A stretch of DNA of 64,000 nt from Macrostomum lignano. Taxonomy: Eukaryota. The stretch spans positions 348,781 through 412,780 of the forward strand of contig NIVC01000224.1 of assembly GCA_002269645.1 (NCBI GenBank). Direction: 5' to 3'. The translations under genes and the position numbers were made by a program. Positions 40,701-62,383 of this stretch are shown in pieces; position 1 is the stretch's first letter, and every line of letters begins with the position of its first letter. Under the pieces are notes generated by a model that made no database searches, had not been told where the DNA came from, and was given only the letters and a program-made list of their open reading frames with translations.

Positions 40701-43700
40701 GGATAGTGATGAAGCTGAGCATTGGATAGTGATGAAGCTGAGCATTGGATAGTGATGAAGCTGAGCATTGGATAGTGATGAAGCTGAGCATTTGATAGTG
40801 ATGAAGCTGAGCATTTGATAGTGATGAAGCTGAGCATTGGATAGTGATGAAGCTGAGCATTGGATAGTGATGAAGCTGAGCATTAGATAGTGATGAAGCT
40901 GAGCATTGGATAGTGATGAAGTGAAGCTGAGCATTGGATAGTGATGAAGCTGAGCATTGGATAGTGATGAAGCTGAGCATTGGATAGTGATGAAGCTGAG
41001 CATTGGATAGTGATGAAGCTGAGCATTGGATAGTGATGAAGCTGAGCATTGGATAGTGATGATGCTGAGCATTGGATAGTGATGAAGCTGAGCATTGGAT
41101 AGTGATGAAGCTGAGCATTGGATAGTGATGAAGCTGAGCATTGGAGAGTGATGAAGCTGAGCATTGGATAGTGATGAAGCTGAGCATTTGATAGTGATGA
41201 AGCTGAGCATTGGATAGTGATGAAGCTGAGCATTGGATAGTGATGAAGCTGAGCATTTGATAGTGATGAAGCTGAGCATTGGATAGTGATGAAGCTGAGC
41301 ATTGGAGAGTGATGAAGCTGAGCATTGGAGAGTGATGAAGCTGAGCATTTGATAGTGATGAAGCTGAGCATTGGATAGTGATGAAGCTGAGCATTGGATA
41401 GTGATGAAGCTGAGCATTGGATAGTGATGAAGCTGAGCATTGGATAGTGATGATGCTGAGCATTTGATAGTGATGAAGCTGAGCATTTGATAGTGATGAA
41501 GCTGAGCATTGGATAGTGATGAAGCTGAGCATTGGATAGTGATGAAGCTGAGCATTTGATAGTGATGAAGCTGAGCATTGGATAGTGATGAAGCTGAGCA
41601 TTGGATAGTGATGAAGCTGAGCATTGGATAGTGATGAAGCTGAGCATTGGATAGTGATGAAGCTGAGCATTGGATAGTGATGAAGCTGAGCATTGGATAG
41701 TGATGAAGCTGAGCATTGATAGTGATGAAGCTGAGCATTGGATAGTGATGAAGCTGAGCATTGGATAGTGATGAAGCTGAGCATTGGATAGTGATGAAGC
41801 TGAGCATTTGATAGTGATGAAGCTGAGCATTGGATAGTGATGAAGCTGAGCATTGGATAGTGATGAAGCTGAGCATTGGAGAGTGATGAAGCTGAGCATT
41901 TGATAGTGATGAAGCTGAGCATTGGATTGTGATGAAGCTGAGCATTAGATAGTGATGAAGCTGAGCATTACAGTAAATTATTGATTCGTTCCCCCACCCA
42001 ACCCTCAAATTAAGGTGGTCGGCCGTCTCCGCTGCCTGGAGGCGCTGGGCGAATGGACAGAATTGGAGGCCACAGCCACGGAGAAGTGGAGCTTCCTATG
42101 CGAGAACACGGACCAAGAGCGGGACAAAGTGGCCGCTATGGCTATCAATGCCTGCTGGTCCAATCGATCCTGGGACAAGCTGTGCAGTTTCCTAAAATTT
42201 TTACCCAAAGATTCTTACGACGCCAATTTTTTCAACGCCGTCTACGCCATTCATCTGGGCGTGTTTGATGAGGCGCGCTGTTTCCTAGATCGCAGTCGCG
42301 ACATTCTAGACGCTGATATTGCCAATGCCGCCAGCGATAGCTACATGCGATCTTATAGTATCTGCGTGTCTGCCCAGACTCTTACTGAACTTGAAGAGGT
42401 CATGGAGTACAGATTAGAGACTGATAGGCGACCGCTGATCAGGGAGTGTTGGTCTAAGCGATTGGAGAGCTGCGATAAACAGGTTGAAGATTGGTGGCGA
42501 TTGCTGCAGGTAAGTCTGAGGCGGAGTCGAGTCCTAGTAGTCTTTGTAGCTGAGTTATCATCGCCTAAGTCTCAGTAGTAAGTAGTTATCACTACCAGCA
42601 AATCTCGATAGTCTGTAGCTAAGCTATCACTACCATTAAATCCTGTGGTCTTTGTAGCTGAGCTATCAGTACCAGTAAGTTCTAGTGGTCTTTGTAGCTG
42701 AGCTATCACTACCATTAAATCCTAGTGGTCTTTGTAGCTGAGCTATCACTACCATTAAATCCTAGTGGTCTTTGTAGCTGAGCTATCACTACCATTAAGT
42801 TCTAGTGGTCTTTGTAGCTGAGCTATCACTACCATTAAATCCTGTGGTCTTTGTAGCTGAGCTATCAGTACCAGTAAGTTCTAGTGGTCTTTGTAGCTGA
42901 GCTATCACTACCATTAAATCCTAGTGGTCTTTGTAGCTGAGCTATCACTACCATTAAATCCTAGTGGTCTTTGTAGCTGAGCTATCACTACCATTAAGTT
43001 CTAGTGGTCTTTGTAGCTGAGCTATCACTACCATTAAGTTCTAGTGGTCTTTGTAGCTAAGCTATCACTACCATTAAGTCCCAGTGGTCTTTGTAGCTAA
43101 GCTATCACTACCATTAAGTCCCAGTAGTCTTTGTAGCTGAGCTTGTCACTTAACAAGCACGGCAATCATGACCTGGTCTATGTATCTTAAAGTAAAAAAA
43201 CACTACACCCTGGGGTCTTTGTAACTTATACGTCAAAGTTTCTAAGTATATAACCAGTATATATCTGTGTAAATCGCATATTATATTATCTTTATATTAA
43301 TCATCGCAGTGTTCTCATAATGCTTATCCCTAGGTTCGCTCTCTGGTACTCAATCCCGTCGAGCAGATGCACGACTACCTCAAATTTGCCAGCCTCTGTC
43401 GGAAAAACAGTCGCACCAGCTTCTCTCTGCGCGTCATCGCCAGCTTGATGGGATTTAATCCCGCCGCGCCGGGGGCCAAGCCGTTGGCTCCGGCTATGGC
43501 CGAGGTAAACAGTCTCTGTGCTGCTGTATATCTTGATTACGGTTGGGGATTAGTGAGGTGGATTGCTAGCATATAACCTATGCATGGATTAAGCAATAGA
43601 ATGGATTGCTAATCTATAGCTCTATACATGAATTAAAGAATAGAATAGATTTCTAATCTATAGCTCTATACATGGATTAAAGAATAGAATGGATTGCTAA

Positions 43701-46700: not shown

Positions 46701-49700
46701 TGTCTTAGTGTCTATCTTAGTGCCTGTCTTAGTGCCTGTCTTAGTGCCTGTCTTAGTGTCTATCTTAGTGCCTGTCTTAGTGCCTGTCTTAGTGCCTGTC
46801 TTAGTGTCTATCTTAGTGCCTGTCTTAGTGTCTATCTTAGTGCCTGTCTTAGTGTCTATCTTAGTGCCTGTCTTAGGGTCTGTCTTAATGCCAGTCTCAG
46901 TTATCTGCCTTATTTATGCTTTTTTGATGTCTGTCTGCTTGTATGTTTTTTTTCTAGTCAGTTACCTTTAATAGTCATCTAATAATAGCTCGAACAAACT
47001 TTTACGGCATGCAAATAATCCATTTTCCTTTTTATTCTTTGTTTACCTTACACTTCTATAGTATTAATCGCTAGATTATTAGGCAAACAAAAAAACATTT
47101 TTATAGTGTAATTACGCCTTTCATACCCGCCTCCGCCGCCCACGCACAGGCCATGATCAATCCGTTGATTCTTGCCTTCAAATCTGGCGGCACTCAGCGT
47201 CGGCGCTGGAACTGCAACAAAATTCTGTACAACATGGAGAGCCACTCGGCCAGGCTCGTTAGCGAAGGCTTCATGCTCAACGAGGAATTGATTAGATTGG
47301 CCATCACCTGGGCCGAGATGTGGTACGAATCAATTGAAGAGGCTTCCAGAGCATTCTTTGGCGAGACTAAGGATATCAGGTTGGTGAATTCGGCTTGAGA
47401 CTTTTCATTGACAGATTTAGGACGGTGGCCCAGCAAATGAGGATCTGGGAGGCTGGCCCAGCAAATGAGGATCTGGGAGGCTGGCCCAGCAAATGAGGAT
47501 CTGGGAGGCTGGCCCAGCAACTGAGGATCTGGGAGGCTAGTGGCCCAGCAACTGAGGATCTGGGAGGCTGGTGGCCCAGCAACTGAGGATCTGGGAGGCT
47601 GGTGGCCCAGCAACTGAGGATCTGGGAGGCTGGCCCAGCAACTGATGATCTGGGAGGCTGGTGGCCCAGCAACTGAGGATCTGGGAGGCTGGCCCAGCAA
47701 CTGAGGATCTGGGAGGCTAGTGGCCCAGCAACTGATGACCTGGGAGGCTGGCCCAGCAACTGAGGATCTGGGAGGCTGGTGGCCCAGCAACTGAGGATCT
47801 GGGAGGCTAGTGGCCCAGCAAATGAGGATCTGGGAGGCTGGTGGCCCAGCAAATGAGGATCTGGGAGGCTGGTGGCCGAGCAACTGAGGATCTGGGAGGC
47901 TGGTGGCCCAGCAACTGAGGATCTGGGAGGCTGGTGGCCCAGCAACTGAGGATCTGGGAGGCTGGTGGCCCAGCAAATGAGGATCTGGGAGGCTGGTGGC
48001 CGAGCAACTGAGGATCTGGGAGGCTGGTGGCACAGCAACTGAGGATCTGGGAGGCTGGCCCAGCAACTGAGGATCTGGGAGGCTAGTGGCCCAGCAACTG
48101 ATGACCTGGGAGGCTGGCCCAGCAACTGAGGATCTGGGAGGCTGGTGGCCCAGCAACTGAGGATCTGGGAGGCTAGTGGCCCAGCAAATGAGGATCTGGG
48201 AGGCTGGTGGCCCAGCAACTGATAACCTGGGAGGCTGGTGGCCCAGCAGCTGATGACCTGGGAGGCTGGTGGCCCAGCAACTGAGGATCTGGGAGGCTGG
48301 TGGCCCAGCAACTGAGGATCTGGGAGGCTGGTGGCCCAGCAACTGAGGATCTGGGAGGCTGGTGGCCCAGCAACTGATAACCTGGGAGGCTGGTGGCCCA
48401 GCAGCTGATGACCTGGGAGGCTGGTGGCCCAGCAACTGAGGATCTGGGAGGCTGGTGACCCAACAACTGAGGATCTGGGGGGCTGGTGGCCTAGCAACAG
48501 GATCTGGGAGGCTGGTGGCCCAGCAACTGAGGATCTGGGGGGCTGGTAGCCCAGCAACAGGATCTGGGAGGCTGGTGGCCCAGCAACTGAGGATCTGGGA
48601 GGCTGGTGGCCCAGCAACTGAGGATCTGGGAGGCTGGTGGCCCAGCAACTGAGGATCTGGGAGGCTGGTGGCCCAGCAACTGAGGATCTGGGAGGCTGGT
48701 GGCCCAGCAACTGAGGATCTGGGAGGCTGGTGGCCCAGCAACTGAGGATCTGGGAGGCTGGTGGCCCAGCAACTGAGGATCTGGGAGGCTGGTGGCCCAG
48801 CAACTGATAACCTGGGAGGCTGGTGGCCCAGCAGCTGATGACCTGGGAGGCTGGTGGCCCAGCAACTGAGGATCTGGGAGGCTGGTGACCCAACAACTGA
48901 GGATCTGGGGGGCTGGTGGCCCAGCAACAGGATCTGGGAGGCTGGTGGCCCAGCAACTGAGGATCTAGGGGGCTGGTAGCCCAGCAACAGGATCTGGGAG
49001 GCTGGTGGCCCAGCAACTGAGGATCTGGGAGGCTGGTGGCCCAGCAACTGAGGATCTGGGAGGCTGGTGGCCCAGCAACTGAGGATCTGGGAGGCTGGTG
49101 GCCCAGCAACTGAGGATCTGGGAGGCTGGTGGCCCAGCAACTGAGGATCTGGGAGGCTGGTGGCCCAGCAACTGAGGATCTGGGAGGCTGGTGGCCCAGC
49201 AACTGAGGATCTGGGAGGCTAGTGGCCCAGCAACTGAGGATCTGGGAGGGGGACAAAATCGCTAGAAATCAGTTTTTCAAACCCGTGTACATTTCGGCTT
49301 GTACTGCTTAGCAACCAATTTTCGCCTGCATCCTTCTAGGCTGATGCTGCAGATTCTGCAGCCGCTGCACGAGTTGATGACGAAGCCGCCCGAGACCCTG
49401 CAAGAGACTGCCTTTCACCAGGAATACGCCAGGGAGCTGCAGGAGTGCCTGGAGCTGTGCGCCAAATATCAGCGCTGCCGGCACATGCAGGAACTGAACG
49501 TTGCTTGGGATATCTACTATAATATATTCCGGCGATTGGGCAAACAGGTGTGCTTTGCGTGCTTGTGAAATTTCAATTCTTCACTAATGAAGAGAAGAGG
49601 GTAGAGAGTGATAAATTACAGAGTGAAATGTGAGAGGCAGAGGGAGTGCAAATGAAGAGGAGTATAGTGCTAGGAGAGAGTGAAAAGGCATAGAGAAGAG

Positions 49701-52700: not shown

Positions 52701-55700
52701 TGTACACAAAATCTGATTGGCTATTGTACACAGAATCTGATTGGCTATTGTACTCAGAATCTGATTGGCTATTGTACACAGAATCTGATTGGCTATTGTA
52801 CACAAAATCTGATTGGCTATTGTACACAGAATCTGATTGGCTATTGTACTCAGAATCTGATTGGCTATTGTACACAGAATCTGATTGGCTATTGTACACA
52901 AAATCTGATTGGCTATTGTACACAGAATCTGATTGGCTATGGTACAAAAAATCTGATTGGCTATTGTACACAGAATCTGATTGGCTATTGTACACAAAAT
53001 CTGATTGGCTATTGTACACAGAATCTGATTGGCTATTGTACACAGAATCTGATTGGCTATTGTACACAGAATCTGATTGGCTATTGTACACAAAATCTGA
53101 TTGGCTATTGTACATAGAATCTGATTGGCTATTGTACACAAAATCTGATTGGCTATTGTACACAGAATCTGATTGGCTATTGTACACAGAATCTGATTGG
53201 CTATTGTACACAGAATCTGATTAAATAGTTTACTTCTATTAGGTAAACTTACTAAGTTAGCTTTTTGTAGGAAAAATGTGCAAAGTGTCTACTTATAGTA
53301 AAATAATAATTAAACAATCATTTTTCCAGATGGCTCCGGAATTTGACAAGCTGACAATTGCTCAAAAGACGGAAGTGTTCGAATACGGTTTAACCTCATG
53401 CGAAGGCGACGATTTAGCTAAGATTATCTGGGATCGGAGCCCCACCGCAGAGGTAAATAAGGGCGGTTCATTTCATTTGCAAGATAGATCGCCTGTGCAT
53501 CCTAAGCGAAGCGTCGTGTGCCTTTTAATTTTTGCCCAAAATTATTTAAATAATATACGCTAAAAAGCTTTTTATGCTACTGTAAGTAGAAATATCAACA
53601 TTTTAATCTATATACACTGCAGCTATGGTTCGAACGGCGGACTAACTATATTCGCTCTCTGGCCACAATGTCCATGGTTGGATACATTCTGGGCCTGGGC
53701 GATCGGCACCCCTCGAATATTATGCTAAATCGAGACACTGGCAAAATTGTTCACATCGATTTTGGTGACTGCTTCGAAGTGGCCATGCATCGGGAGAAAT
53801 TCCCCGAACAGGTGCCATTCCGTCTGACTCGAATGCTGATTAAAGCGCTGGAAGTGACCGGCATCGAGGGCTGCTTTCGTCAGACCTGCATCCTAGTTAT
53901 GAACCTGCTGCGCGAGAATAAAGACTCAATCATGGCCGTGCTGGAAGCCTTCGTCTACGATCCTCTGCTGCAGTGGATTCTGCTGGATCATAAACGGGAA
54001 TTCGGCGACGCTAAGAAGACTATGCAGAACTTTCGCCGCCCAGCCGATCCCATGGCCGCTGTTGCCGATGCCGCAGCTGCCGCCGTGGCTGCCGCTGATC
54101 CGCAGGTTGGTGGAGTAGCTGTTTTTTTAAATAGTCTTGATTACATTGTTAAGCTTTGTTTCACTAGAGGCGTCTGAATAGTCTGAAGCTTGTGTAATCA
54201 AGTGACTTTCAAGTGATTGTGTCTGTGGAAAGTCGAATGACCTTGTGTCAGGAATTTTAAGAGTGTCTATGTGGGTTGTGTCAGCTGTGTCTAAGTTGTG
54301 TCAAGAGTGTCGATGTGGTTTGTGTCAGGAATGTCGATGTGTTTTGTGTCAGGAGTGTTGATGTGGTTTGTGTCAGGAGTGTCGATGTTGTTTGTGTCAG
54401 GAGTGTCAACATTGTGTCAGTAGTGTCAAAGTTGTGTCATGAGTGTCGATGTGGTTTGTGTCAGGAATGTCGATGTGGTTTGTGTCAGGAATGTCGATGT
54501 GGTTTGTGTCAGGAATTTCGATGTGGTTTGTGTCAGGAATGTCGATGTGGTTTGTGTCAGGAATGTCGATGTGGTTTGTGTCAGGAATTTCGATGTGGTT
54601 TGTGTCAGGAATGTCGATGTGGTTTGTGTCAGGAATGTCGATGTGGTTTGTGTCAGGAATGTCGATGTGGTTTGTGTCAGGAATGTCGATGTGGTTTGTG
54701 TCAGGAATTTCGATGTGGTTTGTGTCAGGAATGTCGATGTGGTTTGTGTCAGGAATGTCGATGTGGTTTGTGTCAGGAATGTCGATGTGGTTTGTGTCAG
54801 GAATGTCGATGTGGTTTGTGTCAGGAATGTCGATGTGGTTTGTGTCAGGAGTGTCAACATTGTCTCAGTAGTGTCAAAGTTGTGTCATGAGTGTCGATGT
54901 GGTTTGTGTCAGGAGTGTCGATGTGGTTTGTGTCAGGAGTGTCGATGTGGTTTGTGTCAGGAGTGTTGATGTGGTTTGTGTCAGGAGTGTCGATGTTGTT
55001 TGTGTCAGGAGTGTCAACATTGTGTCAGTAGTGTCAAAGTTGTGTCATGAGTGTCGATGTGGTTTGTGTCAGGAATGTCGATGTGATTTGTGTCAGGAAT
55101 TTCGATGTGGTTTGTGTCAGAAATGTCGATGTGGTTTGTGTCAGGAATGTCGATGTGGTGTGTGTCAGAAATGTCGATGTGGTTTGTGTCAGGAATGTCG
55201 CTGTGGTGTCTCAGGAGTGTCACTGTGGTTTGTGTCAGGAGTGTCAGATTTATAGTAGAAGTGTCAACATTGTGTCAGTAGCGTTGAAGCGGGTTGTGTC
55301 AGGAGTTCTAAGTTAGATTGTGTTAAGACTCAAATCTGTGTTAGTGTTAAAGAATTGTTGAAATTCATCAAGTTTCCACAGACTCTGTTTTAACAATGCC
55401 AGCACAAATTTCAGGCTGCCGGAGCCGCAGGCGGAGTCGGCGCTGGTAACGCCGGAATTCAACAGGCGCCTGGCGCCGACGCCGCCGATATGGAAGGCTA
55501 CAATCCGTGGCGGCATCATTTAGTCAACGGGCCCTGGTTTGGCAACTACGAAGAGTCGAAACAGTTGCGCAAGCGCAGCCGTTCTGGCGTTGTCTACGTG
55601 GAGAAGAGCGGCATTTTCGGCCTGATCTTCAGCGCCCGACCGCCGCCTTTTCATTCGGCGACGACAGCGACTAGCGGCTACCCGGGCGGCCCCGGCAACA

Positions 55701-56020
55701 ATGGCGGCGTTCTGAATGCGGACTCCTCGGAGAGAAGCTCCAGGCAGAACAGCGGCGCAACGTCCGCGGCGGCGTCGGCTGCTGCTGCTGCTGCCGCTGC
55801 CGCCGCAGCCGGCGCCGTGGTTGTGTCGAAGCCGATTAATTCCAAAGCCACCGACGTGATTGGCCGAGTTCGGAAGAAGCTGACTGGACAAGATTTTAAC
55901 GATTCTACTGATAGTAGAGATTTTGTTAACACTATCAGGCAGGTGGACATGCTGCTGGCCAATGCTACGTCTAATCAGAATCTGTGCCAGATGTACATTG
56001 GCTGGTGTCCGTTCTGGTAG
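7456..56020 (+). CDS. TOR: Target of rapamycin serine/threonine kinase, complete gene, 25 coding exons, about 2789 aa
   Basis: Exons joined by hand at GT-AG sites with consistent phases give HEAT repeats ([14 protein letters not shown]), FAT ([25 protein letters not shown]), FRB ([20 protein letters not shown]), kinase ([36 protein letters not shown]) and FATC ([12 protein letters not shown]-stop). Exon lengths sum to 8370 nt, divisible by 3. Homology is judged from remembered human mTOR sequence. Confidence 0.97.
7868..8120 (+). mobile_element. tRNA-derived SINE in TOR intron 1
   Basis: A-box-like AGTTAGAGCATCGG and B-box GGTTCGATTC, followed by the core motifs TTGAGCAAGGCACTTAAC and CACCCAGCTGTAAAATGGGTGCC seen in CORE/V-type SINEs. 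3' end approximate. Confidence 0.75.
8318..8633 (+). CDS. TOR: TOR exon 2
   Basis: ...[15 protein letters not shown] then donor GTATGG at 8634. Acceptor is ambiguous (AG ending 8315, 8317 or 8325, depending on the exon 1 donor). Confidence 0.75.
8720..9215. repeat. Degenerate (TCTAA)n microsatellite, intron 2
   Basis: Repeated TCTAA/TCTA units. Confidence 0.85.
9318..10004 (+). CDS. TOR: TOR exon 3
   Basis: CTGAC..CCACAG acceptor; [25 protein letters not shown]; Ala/Ser/Gly insert; ends CGPQ/GTTGGT, phase 0. Confidence 0.88.
10041..11177. repeat. Minisatellite, intron 3, about 22-bp unit
   Basis: TTACAGATGGTATTACAGACAC with TTACAGA sub-repeats. Confidence 0.95.
11220..11467 (+). CDS. TOR: TOR exon 4
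   Basis: CTCAG/GTG; [17 protein letters not shown]; donor GTAAGT, phase 2. Confidence 0.92.
11648..11945. repeat. Degenerate 6/12-bp repeat, intron 4
   Basis: TCCCTAATCCAA-like units. Confidence 0.8.
12410..14392. repeat. Compound minisatellite, intron 4, 31+6n bp unit
   Basis: GGTTCTGTACTGAAAATCAGGTGATTGTGAT with a variable number of TGTGAT. Confidence 0.96.
14703..14831 (+). CDS. TOR: TOR exon 5 (not in ORF track)
   Basis: TTTTAG acceptor; [42 protein letters not shown]; donor GTGAGC; phases 2/2 fit both neighbours. Confidence 0.9.
14923..15812. repeat. Minisatellite, intron 5, 35-bp unit, about 25 copies
   Basis: TTCAGATATGGCGCTTTCAAATAAACTCATTTTCC plus a CTCTGT variant. Confidence 0.96.
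15860..16107 (+). CDS. TOR: TOR exon 6
   Basis: TTTTCAG acceptor; [34 protein letters not shown]...NFDFE; donor GTTTTA, phase 1. Confidence 0.9.
16131..25313. repeat. Satellite array, intron 6, 21-bp unit, about 9.2 kb (about 435 copies)
   Basis: Variants TAGCATCCCTGAAGCTTAAT(T/G) and TAGCATCCCTTAAGTTTTATG. Confidence 0.98.
25470..25860 (-). mobile_element. Probable 5'-truncated LINE 3' fragment
   Basis: Minus strand reads [26 protein letters not shown]..-stop (25744), resembling the FKxxLKxWL C-terminus of LINE ORF2 proteins, followed by unique sequence. Family unassigned. Confidence 0.4.
25856..26805. repeat. Minisatellite, intron 6, 19/21-bp unit
   Basis: CGCCCTGACTCAT(G/A)AAAGAAT; edge units read CCCTGACACAGAAAATAAT. 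Confidence 0.95.
26908..27032 (+). CDS. TOR: TOR exon 7
   Basis: TTGCAG acceptor; GHSLIQF...[14 protein letters not shown]; donor GTAAGT. Confidence 0.92.
27165..28380. repeat. Minisatellite, intron 7, 30-bp unit
   Basis: GAGGGTGAGATTTCCGGAGCTTCAGTCTTT, about 40 copies. Confidence 0.96.
28790..29690. repeat. Minisatellite, intron 7, 20-bp unit
   Basis: TATTAGAATCAAGATCCCCA, decaying after about 29460. Confidence 0.95.
29760..30145 (+). CDS. TOR: TOR exon 8
   Basis: TCCCAG acceptor; [12 protein letters not shown]...[13 protein letters not shown]...[11 protein letters not shown]; donor GTACGG, phase 2. Confidence 0.9.
30168..31215. repeat. Minisatellite, intron 8, 23-bp unit
   Basis: CTCCCTGATGCTCAAATCTCACT. 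Confidence 0.96.
31299..31653 (+). CDS. TOR: TOR exon 9
   Basis: CTAAC branch plus GTCAG acceptor; FVQPYGK...[23 protein letters not shown]; donor GTAAGT. Confidence 0.92.
32032..32364 (+). CDS. TOR: TOR exon 10
   Basis: TTCCAG/GTG; [13 protein letters not shown]; donor GTGAGA. Confidence 0.92.
32480..33060. repeat. Minisatellite, intron 10, 30-bp unit
   Basis: GATTCGAATATTTGGGATGTAGGGATATG(A/G). Confidence 0.93.
33141..33458 (+). CDS. TOR: TOR exon 11
   Basis: CGCAG/GTG; VVPLYLDVV...[11 protein letters not shown]; donor GTGAGC. Confidence 0.9.
33525..33750. repeat. Irregular short repeat, intron 11
   Basis: CACAA(G/A)CGCTAAACTT and CCACCTACTTT units. Confidence 0.7.
33950..37115. repeat. 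Minisatellite, intron 11, 41-bp unit (38-bp variant), about 3.1 kb
   Basis: CTATATTTCTAAGAAACTCTAGAACCTTATCTCTGAAATAA. Confidence 0.97.
37239..37628 (+). CDS. TOR: TOR exon 12
   Basis: CACAG/GTG; [14 protein letters not shown]...ASRIV; donor GTAAAT. Confidence 0.92.
37690..38615. repeat. Minisatellite, intron 12, 38-bp unit
   Basis: ATGATAATTCCCCTGTAAGCCTCACTTTAAATCGCTCT; homogeneous 37810-38340 with degenerate edges. Confidence 0.94.
38722..39109 (+). CDS. TOR: TOR exon 13
   Basis: CTCCAG/GTG; LQRSW...[13 protein letters not shown]...RESPS; donor GTAAGG, phase 1. Confidence 0.92.
39240..39990. repeat. Minisatellite, intron 13, 31-bp unit
   Basis: GTGAGATTTCCTTAGCTTCCGTATCTGAGGA. Confidence 0.93.
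40030..40535 (+). CDS. TOR: TOR exon 14 (start of FAT)
   Basis: CACAG acceptor, phase 1; [15 protein letters not shown]...YAKALYYKE...[10 protein letters not shown]; donor GTGAGC. Confidence 0.93.
40600..41970. repeat. Minisatellite, intron 14, 23-bp unit, about 59 copies
   Basis: GTGATGAAGCTGAGCATTGGATA. Confidence 0.97.
42015..42509 (+). CDS. TOR: TOR exon 15 (FAT)
   Basis: Rarer AAG acceptor; [14 protein letters not shown]; donor GTAAGT. Confidence 0.9.
42590..43145. repeat. Minisatellite, intron 15, 40-bp unit
   Basis: CTTTGTAGCTGAGCTATCACTACCATTAAGTTCTAGTGGT. Confidence 0.94.
43334..43504 (+). CDS. TOR: TOR exon 16 (FAT)
   Basis: CCTAG acceptor; [25 protein letters not shown]; donor GTAAAC. 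Confidence 0.92.
43580..44800. repeat. Minisatellite, intron 16, 44-bp unit
   Basis: TCTATACATGAATTAAAGAATAGAATGGATTGCTAATCTATAGC. Confidence 0.96.
44818..45324 (+). CDS. TOR: TOR exon 17 (FAT)
   Basis: CCACAG acceptor; [10 protein letters not shown]...FLKLANW...[12 protein letters not shown]; donor GTTCGC. Confidence 0.88.
45360..45985. repeat. Minisatellite, intron 17, 18-bp unit
   Basis: ATAGCCGATATGTATCGA, semi-palindromic. Confidence 0.92.
46046..46369 (+). CDS. TOR: TOR exon 18 (FAT; not in ORF track)
   Basis: CACAG acceptor; AVRGFVKSL...NSLQDSLRL...[16 protein letters not shown]...GKAHPQ; donor GTGAGC. Confidence 0.93.
46381..46895. repeat. Minisatellite, intron 18, 12-bp unit
   Basis: GTG(C/T)CT(G/A)TCTTA. 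Confidence 0.93.
47150..47379 (+). CDS. TOR: TOR exon 19 (end of FAT, FRB helix 1)
   Basis: CACAG acceptor; AMINPL...[23 protein letters not shown]; donor GTTGGT, phase 2. Confidence 0.93.
47425..49250. repeat. Minisatellite, intron 19, 31-bp unit (28-bp variant)
   Basis: GGTGGCCCAGCAACTGAGGATCTGGGAGGCT. Confidence 0.97.
49340..49547 (+). CDS. TOR: TOR exon 20 (FRB)
   Basis: TTCTAG acceptor; LQPLHELM...[15 protein letters not shown]; donor GTGTGC. Confidence 0.93.
49660..49930. repeat. Purine-rich minisatellite, intron 20, 22-bp unit
   Basis: GAGAGTGAAAAGGCAAGGAGGA. Confidence 0.92.
50048..50370 (+). CDS. TOR: TOR exon 21 (kinase N-lobe)
   Basis: CTTAG acceptor; SKQKPR...[21 protein letters not shown]; donor GTGAGA, phase 2. 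Confidence 0.94.
50500..51650. repeat. Minisatellite, intron 21, 16-bp basic unit with higher-order blocks
   Basis: TTATGACAGTCTGTGT, TTACGATAGCTTGTGT and related variants. Confidence 0.93.
51824..51971 (+). CDS. TOR: TOR exon 22 (kinase hinge)
   Basis: GTCAG acceptor; [26 protein letters not shown]; donor GTTTGT. Confidence 0.93.
52073..53222. repeat. Minisatellite, intron 22, 24-bp unit, about 47 copies
   Basis: CTGATTGGCTATTGTACACAGAAT. Confidence 0.97.
53330..53452 (+). CDS. TOR: TOR exon 23 (LST8-binding element region)
   Basis: TTCCAG acceptor; [18 protein letters not shown]...GDDLAK; donor GTAAAT. Confidence 0.93.
53623..54105 (+). CDS. TOR: TOR exon 24 (catalytic and activation loops)
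   Basis: CTGCAG acceptor; LWFERRTNY...GLGDRHPSN...DFGDCFE...EAFVYDPL; donor GTTGGT. Confidence 0.94.
54250..55310. repeat. Minisatellite, intron 24, 24-bp unit
   Basis: TGTCAGGAATGTCGATGTGGTTTG with recurring GTGTCAACATTGTGTCAGTAGTGTCAAAG interruptions. Confidence 0.95.
55415..56020 (+). CDS. TOR: TOR exon 25 (long linker plus FATC)
   Basis: TTTCAG acceptor, phase 0; [11 protein letters not shown]...[15 protein letters not shown] at 56018-56020. Confidence 0.92.
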   Translation, partial: AAGAAGGVGAGNAGIQQAPGADAADMEGYNPWRHHLVNGPWFGNYEESKQLRKRSRSGVVYVEKSGIFGLIFSARPPPFHSATTATSGYPGGPGNNGGVLNADSSERSSRQNSGATSAAASAAAAAAAAAAAGAVVVSKPINSKATDVIGRVRKKLTGQDFNDSTDSRDFVNTIRQVDMLLANATSNQNLCQMYIGWCPFW

Positions 56021-56026
56021 CTGCTG

Positions 56027-56924
56027 GTAAGTGCCCACTATATACGAGGCGGTGGTGGCCCAGAAACTAACAGATTTCTAGATTAGAAGGAGTTAGATCG
56101 AGATAGATGAAGAGAATTGGTGGCATTGGTAGCTCGAGACACTAGAGGATCTGAGAAGCTGGCCCAGCAACTGGGGATCTGGGAGGCTAGTGGCTCAGCA
56201 ACTGATGACCTGGGAGGCTGGTGACCCAGCAACTGAGGATCTGGGAGGCTGGTAGCCCAGCAACTGAGGATCTGGGAGGCTGGTGGCCCAGCAACTGAGG
56301 ATCTGGGAGGCTGGTAGCCCAGCAACTGAGGATCTGGGAGGCTGGTGGCCCAGCAACTGAGGATCTGGGAGGCTGGTGGCCCAGCAACTGATGACCTGGG
56401 AGGCTGGTGACCCAGCAACTGAGGATCTGGGAGGCTGGTAGCCCAGCAACTGAGGATCTGGGAGGCTGGTGACCCAGCAACTGAGGATCTGGGAGGCTGG
56501 TGGCCCAGCAACTGAGGATCTGGGAGGCTGGTGGCCCAGCAACTGATGACCTGGGAGGCTGGTGGCCCAGCAACTGAGGATCTGGGAGGCTGGTGGCCGA
56601 GCAACTGAGGATCTGGGAGGCTGGTGGCCCAGCAACTGAGGATCTGGGAGGCTGGTGGCCGAGCAACTGAGGATCTGGGAGGCTAGTGGCCCAGCAACTG
56701 AGGATCTGGGAGGCTGGTGGCCGAGCAACTGAGGATCTGGGAGGCTGATAGCCCAGCAACTGAGAATCTGGGAGGCTGGTGGCCCAGCAACTGACACTCT
56801 GGGAGACTGGCCCAGCAAAGGATGATCTTAGAGGCTGGCACAGCAAGTTTCAGCCATGGAGGTTATTTCTGCAGCTAAGCACTTTACTTTTAAACAGTCT
56901 AATAATTCACCACCCCAATTTCAG
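56027..56924 (+). other. Putative intron in the TOR 3' UTR
   Basis: Consensus donor CTG/GTAAGT 6 nt after the stop. Candidate acceptor CCAATTTCAG at 56924 with CTAAT about 25 nt upstream. Contains the 31-bp array. Confidence 0.5.
56150..56830. repeat. 31-bp minisatellite downstream of the TOR stop (same family as intron 19)
   Basis: GG(T/C)GGCCCAGCAACTGAGGATCTGGGAGGCT. Confidence 0.95.
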
Positions 56925-57491
56925 CATCGTGCAAGAGCTTTTGAAATCGGAGAGTGCAAAATCTACAAAAGAAGTTGTTTCAAACAATTGTGCTTATAAT
57001 TGACCTCAAAAATTAGAAAAGATGTCTCACTAATTCTTTATTCTAATGCTACAAAAGAACGTTTTATAATGACTAACTTTTTAAGATATGCATTGTTGCG
57101 TATAATTAATAATTCGTTGTTTTTCAAAACCATGAAGATTACGTTTTGAAGTTGATAGAACACAGTTTTAAGGCTAACCTAAATTATCACTTAAAATTAT
57201 ACAATATTTTAATGCAGTGCAAATTTATCGTAGTTATATAAGTTAAGTTTAAACATTTTTGACCATCCGTTTCTAGTATTATATATTCTGATTTGCACTA
57301 ACTGCAGTCTTTTTATATAAATTGTAATCGCTTTTACGCTTTGAGTTAAATAATTATGCCAATATATTAATGAATCCATTATACTACTAGCATCACTATT
57401 CAATTATATAATACATGTAGGCTCGTGTATAATCCGTTTTACCTTTGATAAATTAATTATTTTGTGTTGTAAATCATTGCAAGTGTAGTGA

Positions 57492-57497
57492 AATAAA
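57492..57497 (+). promoter_or_regulatory. Candidate TOR polyadenylation signal
   Basis: First canonical AATAAA I found downstream of the TOR stop, followed by U/GU-rich sequence. Confidence 0.45.
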
Positions 57498-57689
57498 AAA
57501 TTGACCCTGTTTTGTCTAAATTGAATATTAGATAATAGAGTAGATAGTATTAGCTATGAGTTGTCTTGCTTGTTTTCAATATTTGGATTTAGATTATAGA
57601 TTTTAGTTTTAAATCTTTAACTTCCTACCGTGTCATTTTCTGTCCTTTTTTTCAGCATCCTGTACTTTTGTGCTCTTTCTTTTTAACCC

Positions 57690-58240
57690 TCCCTCTCTCT
57701 TCTCCCGCTTTTTTGCCTTTTCAGTCTCCCCTCTTTTTCACTCTCTTCTCTTGCCTTTTCACTCTCTTCTCTTGCCTTTTCACTCTCTTCTCTTGCCTTT
57801 TCACTCTCTTCTCTTGCCTTTTCACTCTCTTCTCTTGCCTTTTCACTCTCTCCTCCTTGCCTTTTCACTCTCTTCTCTTGCCTTTTCACTCTCTCCTCCT
57901 TGCCTTTTCACTCTCTTCTCTTGCCTTTTCACTCTCTCCTCCTTGCCTTTTCACTCTCTTCTCTTGCCTTTTCACTCTCTCCTCCTTGCCTTTTCACTCT
58001 CTTCTCTTGCCTTTTCACTCTCTTCTCTTGCCTTTTCACTCTCTTCTCTTGCCTTTTCACTCTCTTCTCTTGCCTTTTCACTCTCTTCTCTTGCCTTTTC
58101 ACTCTCTTCTCTTGCCTTTTCACTGTCCCCAGTCAGTCAGTCAGTCAGTCAGTCATTCAGTCAGTCAGTCAGTCAGTCAGTCAGTCAGTCAGTCAGTCAG
58201 TCAGTTAGTCAGTCAGTCAGTCAGTTAGTCAGTCAGTCAC
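57690..58240. repeat. Pyrimidine-rich 21/22-bp minisatellite followed by (CAGT)n
   Basis: CTCTCCTCCTTGCCTTTTCACT to about 58125, then CAGT repeats. Confidence 0.94.
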
Positions 58241-58350
58241 CACTCAATTTATTGCATGATACTCTAAACTTTTAGCAGGCATACTTAACCAAAAAAGAAA
58301 AAAATTGCAAGAAAAGAAAAAAACAAACTATACTAAAAACTTGAAAGACA

Positions 58351-59520
58351 ATGTCCGGCGATCTGTCCACCGACATCAACCCGTTGGAGATTGGCTGCGT
58401 AGACGAGGCGGCTTCAGCGGAGCCGCACAAGCTGCTGTCTCACCTGTTCCCCTCCAAGATTGGCGGCAAGCCGGCATGGCTGGCCTTGGACCAGCTGCCC
58501 GGGGAGGCGCAGCTTCGATGCTGCATCTGCTCCAACCGAATGACCTTCCTGATGCAGGTTTACTGTCCGATTGAGTCCAGTGTGTCGGCCACGGCTTCCG
58601 ATAATGCCGATAACAATACCGATAATGACACTTTTCATCGTTGCTTATTCTTTTTCATGTGCTCCAATGGTGGTTGCTATGGCAACGTGGATAAATCTAG
58701 CACGCCGAATGCTCCCGTGAAAGTGTTTCGCTCCCAGCTGGCTAGGAAGAATCCGTATTACCCGTTTGAGCCGCCGAACTACGAAGCGAGCTGGTCGGAG
58801 ATTGTCAAACTAATCGATGCTAAGCAAGTGTTTCACCCGTCGTCATGGCAACCGCTATGCGCCCTGTGCGGCTGCCCAGCTAGCGGCTCTGAAGCGGTGC
58901 AGTGCGACGACTGCAGCTACAAGCCAGGCGGGCTGTACTGCTGCAAGGAGCATCGCGACGCCGACGCTACACGACGCGCCGAGTTTTGCAAACTTGTCGA
59001 TAAACAGCAACATAAAATGGATGGAGAACTTCTACTACGTTTGTGGACGCTGCAGTCGGATTTAAACGATGAGCAGCAGTTTCTGCATAGCAACGGTCGG
59101 CCGCTACCTGAGCTGGGCCTACTCATCGGCCCCGATCCGGGCAACGGCATGGCCGACGATAAAATCGACATGAATCGTCGATTCGGCGATGTGCCCGACG
59201 ATGAAGTCGCCTCCGACGATGCTAATGATTCGTCGTCGTTGTCGTCTGAAAATGTCGACGATGATGTCGACGCAGCGATGGAGGTTGCAGACGATGGAGA
59301 GCGCCGTCGGCAGCAGCAGCAGAGCTCGCCGACCCCGATGCACTCGACAAATCAGGCCGGCGACGCGGCTAATATCGACGCCGCTGCCGTCGCTGATTCC
59401 GAGGCTAATCGCAGCTTCAACGAATTCGCCGCCGGAATCGAACAGCTGGCCGCTAAAGAGACGCCGGCCCTGAAACAGCTGGCCGAGTTTAAACGTGCTA
59501 CTAGACGCGAGCCCGGACAG
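58351..59520 (+). CDS. PDCD2: Programmed cell death protein 2 (PDCD2/Zfrp8/Tsr4-family uS5 chaperone), exon 1
   Basis: FPSKIGGKPAWL, CxxC..FLMQVYCP, FHRCLFFFMC, KVFRSQL and a MYND-like Cys cluster; donor CAG/GTGAGA at 59521. Confidence 0.9.
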
Positions 59521-59619
59521 GTGAGAGAGAGAAATGGGGATGAGAGAAAGGTGTAATAACTGTGACAGAGGCGATATTAAATGTGCAACCTAACTCTTAG
59601 TTGGTAGAAAATAGATGAA

Positions 59620-60135
59620 GATAGGTGGAGACTGGAAGATTGGTGAATGCTAGAGGAAGATATAGAGACTACAGGGAGATGGGTAGAGACTAGATGAAGA
59701 AAGGTAGAGACTAGATGAAGATAGGTAGAGACTAGATGAAGATAGGTAGAGACTAGATGAAGAAAGGTAGAGACTAGATGAAGATAGGTAGAGACTAGAT
59801 GACGATGGGTAGAGACTAGAGGGAGATGAGTAGAGACTAGAGGGAGATGAGTAGAGACTAGAGGGAGATGAGTAGAGACTAGAGGGAGATGAGTAGAGAC
59901 TAGAGGGAGATGAGTAGAGACTAGATGAAGAAAGGTAGAGACTAGATGAAGATAGGTAGAGACTAGATGAAGATAGGTAGACTAGATGAAGAAAGGTAGA
60001 GACTAGATGAAGATCGGTAGAGACTAGAGGGAGATGAGTAGAGACTAGAGGGAGATGAGTAGAGACTAGAGGGAGATGAGTAGAGACTAGAGGGAGATGA
60101 GTAGAGACTAGAGGGAGATGAGTAGAGACTAGAGT
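59620..60135. repeat. Minisatellite in the PDCD2 intron, 21-bp unit
   Basis: GTAGAGACTAGAGGGAGATGA and GTAGAGACTAGATGAAGATAG. Confidence 0.94.
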
Positions 60136-60420
60136 GAGAAAGTTAAAGAAGTTAGACTGAGAACGTCGTGATGTTAGACAAAAATGGAAAAAGACATAGG
60201 AGAGAACGGAACGAGAATAATTAATAAAGACACAGTAATTATCGTTTAAGCGATTTCTACTACCCAACAATCATAATAACTCCACAATATTGATGCAAAA
60301 ATCGTAGTTTAAATTTATATATTAGCCCCCGATATGTATTGTTAACATATCGAAAATAATAATTATAATAACGTTATTATAATAACTTTCCACCAAATGC
60401 CATACTCGCTCTTCCCTCAG

Positions 60421-60690
60421 GTATTTCGCTATCAACGCCACGGCGCGCCTCTACTAATTAGCGATCAATCAGTGGCGCCGGCGCCAGCCTGCGCTAGATG
60501 CGACGCCGCTCGCCAATTTGAATGCCAAATCACTCCACAGCTGTTGAACTGGCTGCCATTGAATGAGTCACCGGATAGCGTCGGGCCAGATTTTGGCAGC
60601 GTGCTCGTGTACACCTGCTCCCGTAGCTGCCCGCTAGCTGGAGAACTCGGCAACTATGCGGAAGAGTTCGTTGCTATTCAGTATGTATGA
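60421..60690 (+). CDS. PDCD2: PDCD2 exon 2 (PDCD2_C domain)
   Basis: CCCTCAG acceptor, phase 0; VFRYQR..PLLIS..CARC..RQFECQITPQLL..DFGSVLVYTCSRSC..EEF; TGA. Total about 479 aa. Confidence 0.9.
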   Translation, partial: VFRYQRHGAPLLISDQSVAPAPACARCDAARQFECQITPQLLNWLPLNESPDSVGPDFGSVLVYTCSRSCPLAGELGNYAEEFVAIQYV

Positions 60691-60869
60691 ATTCTTCATG
60701 CAGAAAAAACAAAATAATTGAAAATTTTTTTCGATCGTACTTGATTAGATTCACAGATGCAAAATAACTCGATACGTCACTTGCAATTAAGTTGTGAAAA
60801 AGCAGAGCATCTATTCTTTATTGAGTAGTTTGTGTGCGCTCAGTGACACTTACGTTTAATGTTTAAGTG

Positions 60870-61385
60870 TTAGCCAATAAGAGAGCAGTAAGGAGAGAAG
60901 TGAAAGTCAGAGGGACGAAGTCAGAGGGGCAGGCCCAATCTATCTCAGCCAATGTGAGAGCAGTAAGGAGAGAAGTGAAAGTCAGAGGGACGAAGTCAGA
61001 GGGGCAGGCCCAATCTAGCCCAGCCAATGAGAGAGCAGTAAGGAGAGAAGTGAAAGTCAGAGGGGCAGGCCCAATCTAGCCCAGCCAATGAGAGAGCAGT
61101 AAGGAGAGAAGTGAAAGTCAGAGGGGCAGGCCCAATCTAGCCCAGCCAATGAGAGAGCAGTAAGGAGAGAAGTGAAAGTCAAAAAGACGAAGTCAGAGGG
61201 ACAGGCCCAATCTATCTCAGCCAATGAGAGAGCAGTAAGAAGAGAAGTGAAAGTCCGAAGGACGAAGTCAGAAGGGAAGACCGAATCTAGTTCAGCCAAT
61301 GAGAGAGCAGTAAGAACAAAGTGAAAGTCAGAGGGGCAGGCCCAATCTAGCTCAGCCAATAAGAATGCAGTAAGGACGGAGGTCA
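60870..61385. repeat. Tandem repeat, about 61-75 bp unit, about 8 copies
   Basis: GTCAGAGGGGCAGGCCCAATCTAGCCCAGCCAATGAGAGAGCAGTAAGGAGAGAAGTGAAA. Confidence 0.9.
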
Positions 61386-62383
61386 AGTCAGGCGCAAGCG
61401 TATATGAAGAAAGCCAAACTGTTTATCAGCCTGGTTGGGGGCTGTTGCCCAACCCATTTTTGCTCACGCACTGGATTTGGCTTTTTCAACTTTTACTGCA
61501 AATTTCAGTTTGTAAAATCCAATTTTTACTTTTATTTAAGAAGAAACGCTAATTTTACTACTGAAAAAAGAGTAGATAAGGACAATTTTGTGAGTGACAC
61601 ACTAGTTATTTTAGTATCCGTGATCATTATCTTGAGCATTTAAGCTGGCAAGATCGGTCTGTCTTATTTTCGTTGTCTAATTTGGCATTATAAAACATCT
61701 ATTTTTGTATTCTTTTGCTTAATTTTCTTTGTTTGTTTTCTTTAATTAACGCGCAACACTTTAATACTACTTACAACAGTAATTGATTTTATTTTCCGTC
61801 ATATTTATTCAATATAACTTATTTCAGCGAGAAGTTCTGTAAGTTCTTCTGCATGCAATTGGTGTGCTTCAACTAATGCCTACTACTTATAGTAATCATG
61901 TATTTCTATTTAAGCCTTATTTTTGTTTATTTCTCTCTTTATCCAGCTGTTTTGTGCCAAAAGCATAAAATCTAGTAATTATTAATAATATATAAAAATA
62001 ATCTTCATTTTTTTTCTAATACTATATTGGCCCCATATTAAATTACCATCGATCCATCATTTGCTTGCTATGGTCCAAACTAATAATAACAAAGCGTTTA
62101 AATAAACGGTGCAATAATACTTAGTTGATAAAAAACAAGCATATCGACATTGAATTTTTTTATTTAATAACCCTTTTATGTGTAGTTATTTAGTTGCGAT
62201 GCTTAGAAAGTTATTTTCGATACATATCGGCTATAATTATGTTCACTCTGCTTATGTCACGAGTCGAAATCCTCTCTTTAACGTAATCCGTTTTCTATTT
62301 TCAGCAATCTCAGTTGTCATTATTATATTAAACTGGTTTCTCTTCGTCATAATAATCGGATAAAATAATTGATTGATTGGTCC

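Follow-up and report, generated by a model that had tools for sequence, protein, structure and literature searches.

A candidate TOR–PDCD2 operon in Macrostomum lignano and a genome-encoded copy of the spliced leader in front of PDCD2

The TOR–PDCD2 spacer and its three copies

The window analyzed here, a 64,000-nt stretch of Macrostomum lignano scaffold NIVC01000224.1 (assembly Mlig_3_7), carries the gene of the kinase TOR followed by PDCD2 and by a gene coding for a 739-aa protein, all three on the + strand, as had been noted in an initial annotation of this DNA. We focused on the 2330-nt spacer between TOR and PDCD2. It contains a consensus splice donor just past the TOR stop codon, a single poly(A) signal and, directly in front of the PDCD2 leader, a copy of the last 17 nt of the M. 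lignano spliced leader (SL). The features of the locus, including untranslated regions (UTRs) and coding sequences (CDSs), are listed below; tandem arrays were identified with Tandem Repeats Finder (TRF).

7456–56020, + strand: TOR gene, CDS model of about 25 exons and 2754 aa; last coding exon 55466–56020, stop codon TAG at 56018–56020
56027–56032, + strand: GTAAGT, candidate 5' splice site, after CTGCTG (56021–56026) and 6 nt past the TOR stop
56160–56838, no strand: 31-mer tandem array (TRF), 22 copies (46 and 32 in the paralogues)
56848–56924, + strand: candidate 3' ends of a 3'-UTR intron, namely, three acceptor-like [TC]TNCAG motifs with their last bases at 56853, 56874 and 56924
56925–57672, + strand: AT-rich unique segment, probable terminal TOR 3' UTR, with AATAAA at 57492–57497, a stretch of 47% T and, ending at 57655, a strong acceptor-like site
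57673–58124, + strand: CT-rich 21-mer tandem array, 91% pyrimidine
58130–58239, no strand: (CAGT)n microsatellite, 27 copies (73 and 220 in the paralogues)
58242–58258, + strand: ACTCAATTTATTGCATG, identical (17/17) to the final 17 nt of the 35-nt SL, with (CAGT)n on its 5' side and the PDCD2 leader on its 3' side
58259–58350, + strand: A-rich PDCD2 leader, containing TTTTAG/CAG (58270–58278)
58351–60690, + strand: PDCD2 CDS, 479 aa; exon 1 58351–59520, intron 59521–60420 (with a 21-mer array inside), exon 2 60421–60690
60691–62129, + strand: PDCD2 3' UTR, with AATAAA at 62101–62106 and predicted cleavage at GTTGAT/AAAAAA (62129)
62298–62304 (acceptor-like TTTTCAG) and 62384 (annotated ATG), + strand: start of the third gene (739 aa), about 175 nt past the PDCD2 3' end (62129)

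The assembly holds three copies of this locus, namely, L001, which lies in the window and matches the studied region base for base (offset -48350), L002, and L003. TOR precedes PDCD2 in L002 and L003 as well, and the first exon of the third gene is colinear in both. The order of elements is common to all three: the stop codon with six bases and GTAAGT, the 31-mer array, TTTCAG, an AT-rich segment with a single AATAAA, the CT-rich array, CCCAG, (CAGT)n, the leader, and the ATG. Despite this shared order, array lengths differ two- to eight-fold among the copies. The eight-fold range is that of (CAGT)n, which spans 58130–58239 in the window, 9597–9890 in L002 and 9009–9890 in L003, near-identical paralogues; its repeat TCAGTC reads like an initiator-type motif. 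Altogether, the three tandem arrays make up 53% of the spacer, and tandem arrays of their own are also found in nearly every TOR intron, in the PDCD2 intron, and in both spacers. The spacer contains no credible open reading frame (ORF), and no Rfam match was found in the spacer or in the window.

The donor was found exactly where the initial annotation had placed it, 6 nt past the TOR stop, 56021 being the first base past TAG. The + strand of the window contains 16 instances of GTAAGT, and the chance of one lying 10 nt or less past a given stop codon is about 0.0025 (about 0.02 for GT[AG]AG). The donor at 56027 is the sole GT[AG]AG in the spacer, is identical across the three loci, and resembles confirmed TOR donors, such as CTGCAG/GTAAGT at 42510. 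Similarly, TTTCAG at 56853 and 56924 resembles confirmed TOR splice sites, and the site at 56924 (CCCCAATTTCAG/C) is kept in all three loci. A consensus donor and acceptor are hence both present past the stop codon. In addition, the 31-mer satellite lying between them also fills, in the same orientation, a homology-supported TOR intron (47426–49253). Judging from these motifs, a 3'-UTR intron running from 56027 to 56853, 56874 or 56924 is plausible as the simplest role of the donor. Such an intron would remove the 31-mer satellite, leaving a TOR 3' UTR of about 0.6 kb instead of about 1.5 kb, and would sit too near the stop codon to trigger nonsense-mediated decay. The donor would normally not be joined to the PDCD2 leader.

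The only AATAAA or ATTAAA in the spacer is the AATAAA at 57492–57497, and there is one per spacer in each of the three loci. Based on this single signal, the TOR mRNA is predicted to be cleaved near 57515. The signal had been described as lying about 160 nt ahead of the acceptor-like site at 57655 with U-rich sequence in between; we measured 158 nt with 47% T. Further downstream, positions 57724 to 58130 form a pyrimidine tract free of AG (408 nt), which closes with CCCCAG (AG at 58131–58132).

Acceptor motifs in the spacer carry little information: there are 56 CAG and six [TC]TNCAG, and the 3' ends of confirmed TOR introns show little beyond CAG. Besides 56924, 57655, 58275 and 58278, for which the initial annotation had proposed acceptors, further acceptor-like sites are found at 56853, 56874, 57724 and 58132. 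The four proposed AGs all exist and every motif was in place to within one base. The site ending at 57655 (CCTTTTTTTCAG/C) has seven T instead of eight, and the CAG ending at 58278 lies 72 nt, not 73 nt, before the PDCD2 ATG (58351–58353), the stretch between them being 62% A. The two AGs closest to the ATG read CTTTTAG/CAG/G. The first of them (58274–58275) is AA in both L002 and L003, while the CAG at 58278 is kept in all copies.

A spliced leader suffix in the genome

M. lignano possesses one 35-nt SL, CGGTCTCTTACTGCGAAGACTCAATTTATTGCATG (PMC8629364), which includes CGGTCTCTTACTGCGAAG and in which GCGAAG stands 5' of ACTCAATTT. The 17-mer at 58242–58258 occurs only once in the window, in a 17-mer space of about 1.7 x 10^10 sequences. 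The copy is exact in L002 (9893–9909) and is found at the same place in L003 with one mismatch. Past the leader, the SL RNA gene of metagenome contig L088 continues with GTAAGACACC (GTAAG...), whereas the window continues with ATACTCTAAAC. Because the two sequences diverge at this point, the copy ends precisely at the SL exon boundary, as it would in a spliced product. At its other end, the copy begins straight after the internal AG of the leader, and the genome has CC at that place.

Besides chance matches, which were the majority, a scan of metagenome contigs with the 17-mer yielded one genuine SL RNA gene and five transcripts, derived from other genes, that were SL-capped. The former is a complete Macrostomum-type SL RNA gene (L088 617–734, Ga0302322_100095745). 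The latter are five contigs starting with the leader (L052, L058, L062, L067 and L090, from Ga0316592), and flatworm RNA is thus present in those samples.

The 9-mer that forms the acceptor pair at 58270–58278, TTTTAGCAG, is also found in the SL RNA gene (L088 691–699), within its Sm-site region AUUUUUAGCAG. It sits downstream of the SL copy in the window, which is the order seen in the SL RNA gene. This likeness is not significant by itself, with a local-alignment P of 0.035 against shuffled sequences and of 0.13 against genomic windows. We considered whether the leader might be an SL RNA pseudogene and found little support for this, as just a 9-mer is common to both and there is no Rfam match.

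A candidate operon and the origin of the leader copy

In M. lignano, SL trans-splicing concerns about 30% of the genes, about 15% of the genes are in operons, and about 7% of the transcripts in the assembly are multi-gene precursors; genes separated out of a single transcriptional unit carry a shared name prefix. The distances between operon genes are inflated by repeats, and after subtraction of these, the distances have a mode of about 100 bp, with a threshold set at 1 kb (PMC8629364). In that study, operons are defined as adjacent genes in the same orientation, with a trans-spliced downstream gene, a repeat-adjusted distance below 1 kb and one polycistronic precursor for both genes. We also attempted to read the size of the transcriptional unit from the Mlig number and rejected this approach, since these numbers are not length-sorted. 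The supplements of two further M. lignano papers have no entry for these genes.

TOR and PDCD2 are adjacent on the + strand with no opposite-strand gene between them. PDCD2 (Mlig001567.g1, Mlig009522.g2) is listed in Supplementary Table 2 of PMC5816591 as TRANSSPLICED, "Neoblast, stringent," with a length of 2969. The distance from the predicted TOR cleavage site (about 57515) to the leader, taken at 58259 or 58279, is 743 to 763 nt; it decreases to 181 to 201 nt once the TRF arrays are subtracted, which is well within 1 kb, the TOR 3' end used here being the predicted one. On this sequence evidence, TOR–PDCD2 would most likely be a repeat-inflated SL-type operon of the kind already known in this species, and we hold the odds of this to be about even. 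We infer both the co-transcription of the two genes and the choice of the PDCD2 acceptor.

According to this model, RNA polymerase II would transcribe TOR, and the TOR mRNA would be cleaved and polyadenylated about 20 nt past the sole AATAAA (57492). Transcription would then read through about 0.75 kb into PDCD2, of which about 0.2 kb is unique sequence and the remainder consists of the pyrimidine array and (CAGT)n. Finally, the 35-nt SL would be added at a CAG within the last 220 nt or so before the ATG, giving the 5' end of PDCD2.

Such an arrangement closely resembles the SL operons described in the same species (Wudarski et al. 2017, PMC5730564; Ustyantsev and Berezikov 2021, PMC8629364), with which it shares the 35-nt leader, the co-oriented neighbors, a downstream gene flagged as trans-spliced, and a repeat-inflated distance whose adjusted value is far below 1 kb. 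However, the TOR–PDCD2 pair has not been individually described, and its annotated SL site seems to coincide with an SL suffix lacking an AG. The M. lignano locus can also be set beside the nematode model.

In the SL2 operons of Caenorhabditis elegans, 3'-end formation of the upstream gene is followed by a short U-rich spacer (about 100 nt) and by SL addition to the downstream gene. The succession proposed here is the same, from TOR 3'-end formation through a U-rich spacer to an SL on the downstream gene. Unlike C. elegans, M. lignano has a single SL type, and the spacer is kilobases long through its satellites instead of about 100 nt.

Several observations weigh against the operon. The three copies are 97 to 99% identical, and because of this, the conservation of splice motifs among them says little. 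The raw spacer measures 2.3 to 3.6 kb across the loci, and about 60% of the trans-spliced M. lignano genes lie outside operons. Synteny in related species, which the initial annotation had suggested as a check, did not support the pairing either: no TOR gene was seen 10 kb or less from PDCD2 in Anoplocephala, a cestode, or in Physella, a snail, and an ancient functional coupling is therefore unsupported. Further points concern the PDCD2 5' end. In L002, 2969 nt is the exact span from the first base after the SL copy to GTTGAT/AAAAAA, 23 nt past AATAAA, minus the 900-nt intron, whereas a 5' end after the conserved CAG would place the 3' end 43 nt past AATAAA. The published 5' end thus seems to be at 58259 and not at 58276 or 58279, where the initial annotation expected SL addition. 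This assignment rests on one length value, and the same length may alternatively reflect a 5' end inside (CAGT)n combined with the upstream AATAAA. Moreover, the two bases before 58259 are TG, not AG, in all three loci. Since the implied site follows an SL suffix without an AG, and since reads starting inside the copy could mimic SL reads, the TRANSSPLICED flag may itself be an artifact.

Some of these points would fit a monocistronic PDCD2, transcribed from its own promoter in the spacer (start at about 57520 to 58240), with an outron replaced by the SL; TOR would then end independently and the adjacency would be incidental. The many trans-spliced genes outside operons, the long raw spacer, and the lack of conserved TOR–PDCD2 synteny in two other lophotrochozoans all go in this direction, as does the neoblast enrichment of PDCD2, there being no TOR entry among the table rows listed. 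Nevertheless, the unique sequence available to a promoter is limited to about 160 nt past the poly(A) region and about 20 nt in front of the leader, after the microsatellite, and the pair satisfies the published 1-kb operon rule. We thus regard a separate promoter as rather unlikely, if worth serious consideration.

It is also conceivable, though improbable in our view, that PDCD2 is not trans-spliced at present and has a conventional capped mRNA starting upstream of 58242, the TRANSSPLICED flag arising from ordinary reads that start in the 17-nt suffix and are trimmed as SL. The exact fit of the L002 length to a start directly past the copy and the TG at the junction in three loci would be explained in this way. 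In the published pipeline, peaks are indeed called from reads whose SL has been trimmed off, and the same group found an earlier "SL RNA" to be the 5' end of a protein-coding gene. On the other hand, the minimum SL length of the pipeline is not stated, 85% of the neoblast genes are trans-spliced, and a conserved CAG lies 20 nt downstream.

Finally, the dicistronic TOR–PDCD2 mRNA that had been proposed initially as a second option would arise from cis-splicing of the 56027 donor to 58275 or 58278. This is very hard to reconcile with the data even though this donor is the only one in the spacer and a CAG precedes the leader. Across 24 parasitic flatworms, operon-resolving acceptors are very rarely used for cis-splicing, and such use is considered deleterious. 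In addition, nearer acceptors (56853–56924, 57655, 57724 and 58132) and the poly(A) signal intervene, the published PDCD2 transcript is a separate 2969-nt mRNA, and the AG at 58275 is missing from two of the three copies. Overall, the earlier observation of this locus is confirmed and its interpretation is partly supported: an SL-using, operon-bearing flatworm, co-oriented genes, the TRANSSPLICED listing and an adjusted distance of about 0.2 kb all speak for a trans-spliced operon, and the PDCD2 5' end seems to lie away from the sites that had been expected.

If real, a TOR–PDCD2 operon would be a tidy and unsurprising addition to a catalogue of roughly ten thousand M. lignano operon genes. 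The genome-encoded SL copy, which is the one unexpected feature of the locus, matters more than the operon. Its origin is a matter of inference, and relict SLs in other organisms offer a comparison. Dinoflagellate retrogenes carry relict SLs (PMC5585692, PMC6050394) that are likewise 5'-truncated, stand in the DNA beside a 5' UTR, end at the exon boundary, and start just past an internal AG. In all three loci of M. lignano, we found an SL sequence beside the 5' UTR that ends at the exon-intron boundary. The M. lignano copy departs from the dinoflagellate case in several ways: PDCD2 still has its ancestral intron, the genome lacks the AG itself, a clear poly(A) relic is missing, and we saw a single instance, in a metazoan. 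Partial SLs at retrotransposon loci of parasitic flatworms have been explained by reverse transcription of SL-bearing transcripts (PMC12582326). These are also partial SLs in flatworm DNA, but the M. lignano copy lies at a conserved cellular gene and not at a long terminal repeat or long interspersed element. In the literature that we searched, there was no report of an SL copy at a conserved cellular gene of an animal.

The SL copy may be the trace of a partial conversion, in which a cDNA carrying the SL acted on the 5' part of PDCD2. A full retrogene origin was rejected: the first 390 codons are intronless, but the intron that follows codon 390 sits at a position shared with the PDCD2 gene of Physella. 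The two hallmarks of a cDNA origin, intron loss and a poly(A) remnant, were not observed: the intron is kept and only an A6 run is present at the 3' end. The retained ancestral intron weighs against the proposal insofar as PDCD2 is not a simple retrocopy. The consequences for upstream ORFs (uORFs) were also considered. The SL ends in AUG, and joining it at 58259 creates a uORF of only 3 codons, compared to 22 codons at 58279 and 32 to 191 codons at the upstream acceptors. The short and harmless uORF at 58259 fits this position as the ancestral junction.

We therefore put forward, as a tentative proposal that we think has a smaller chance of being right than of being wrong, that the SL-capped mRNA of PDCD2 served, through cDNA-mediated conversion, as the source of the gene's present 5' end ("mRNA recycling," documented so far for dinoflagellates). 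PDCD2 would thereby have lost its old acceptor and would now depend on TOR read-through and on a new one. It would follow that some of the trans-splice sites published for M. lignano are SL suffixes encoded in the genome and not real junctions. The copy suggests a genome-wide test, in which annotated trans-splice sites without an AG are searched for an SL suffix directly on their upstream side. Such a test would rid the M. lignano trans-splicing catalogue of false positives and would show whether SL-bearing cDNAs get recycled into metazoan genes, which is one proposed route to operons and to promoterless gene copies.

The TOR, PDCD2, and third genes

TOR drives ribosome biogenesis, and PDCD2/Tsr4 is a chaperone of the ribosomal protein uS5. 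Their co-transcription, if real, would place a master growth kinase and the uS5 chaperone under one promoter in an animal used as a stem-cell model. This functional link serves only as a rationale.

The 2754-aa product encoded upstream of PDCD2 contains the Pfam domains mTOR_dom, FAT, FRB, PI3_PI4_kinase and FATC. Its exon model was built with splice choices guided by tblastn with TOR orthologues, and the sole combination yielding 2754 aa was kept. The modeled protein has no exact match in the protein collection searched, word-index searches of proteins with the last exon (55466–56020) as a query gave no match, and no M. lignano TOR was found in an exhaustive search of representative proteins. 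M. lignano TOR seems to be missing from protein collections, though the gene is on record. In the last exon of the model, 55466–55830 codes for an insert of about 120 residues, with a poly-alanine run in it, that lies between the kinase domain and FATC. Other TORs have no counterpart of the insert, and a protein search with it matched nothing.

The 479-aa translation of the joined PDCD2 exons is identical to PAA87627.1 (BOX15_Mlig009522g2, Mlig009522.g2) and carries the Pfam domain PDCD2_C. The translation of exon 1 (58351–59520) is by itself 98% identical to an M. lignano PDCD2_C protein. Exact-product look-ups with the PDCD2 variants and with the unspliced exon 1 ORF matched only the three GenBank genomic loci and no RNA-derived contig. 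The MYND zinc-finger region of PDCD2 (58850–59010, residues 170 to 220 approximately) is expanded and divergent. In precomputed Pfam annotations, flatworm PDCD2 proteins are listed with PDCD2_C and not with zf-MYND, whereas mollusc PDCD2s do have zf-MYND.

The third gene is co-oriented and lies close behind PDCD2. The transcription unit could therefore hold three genes.

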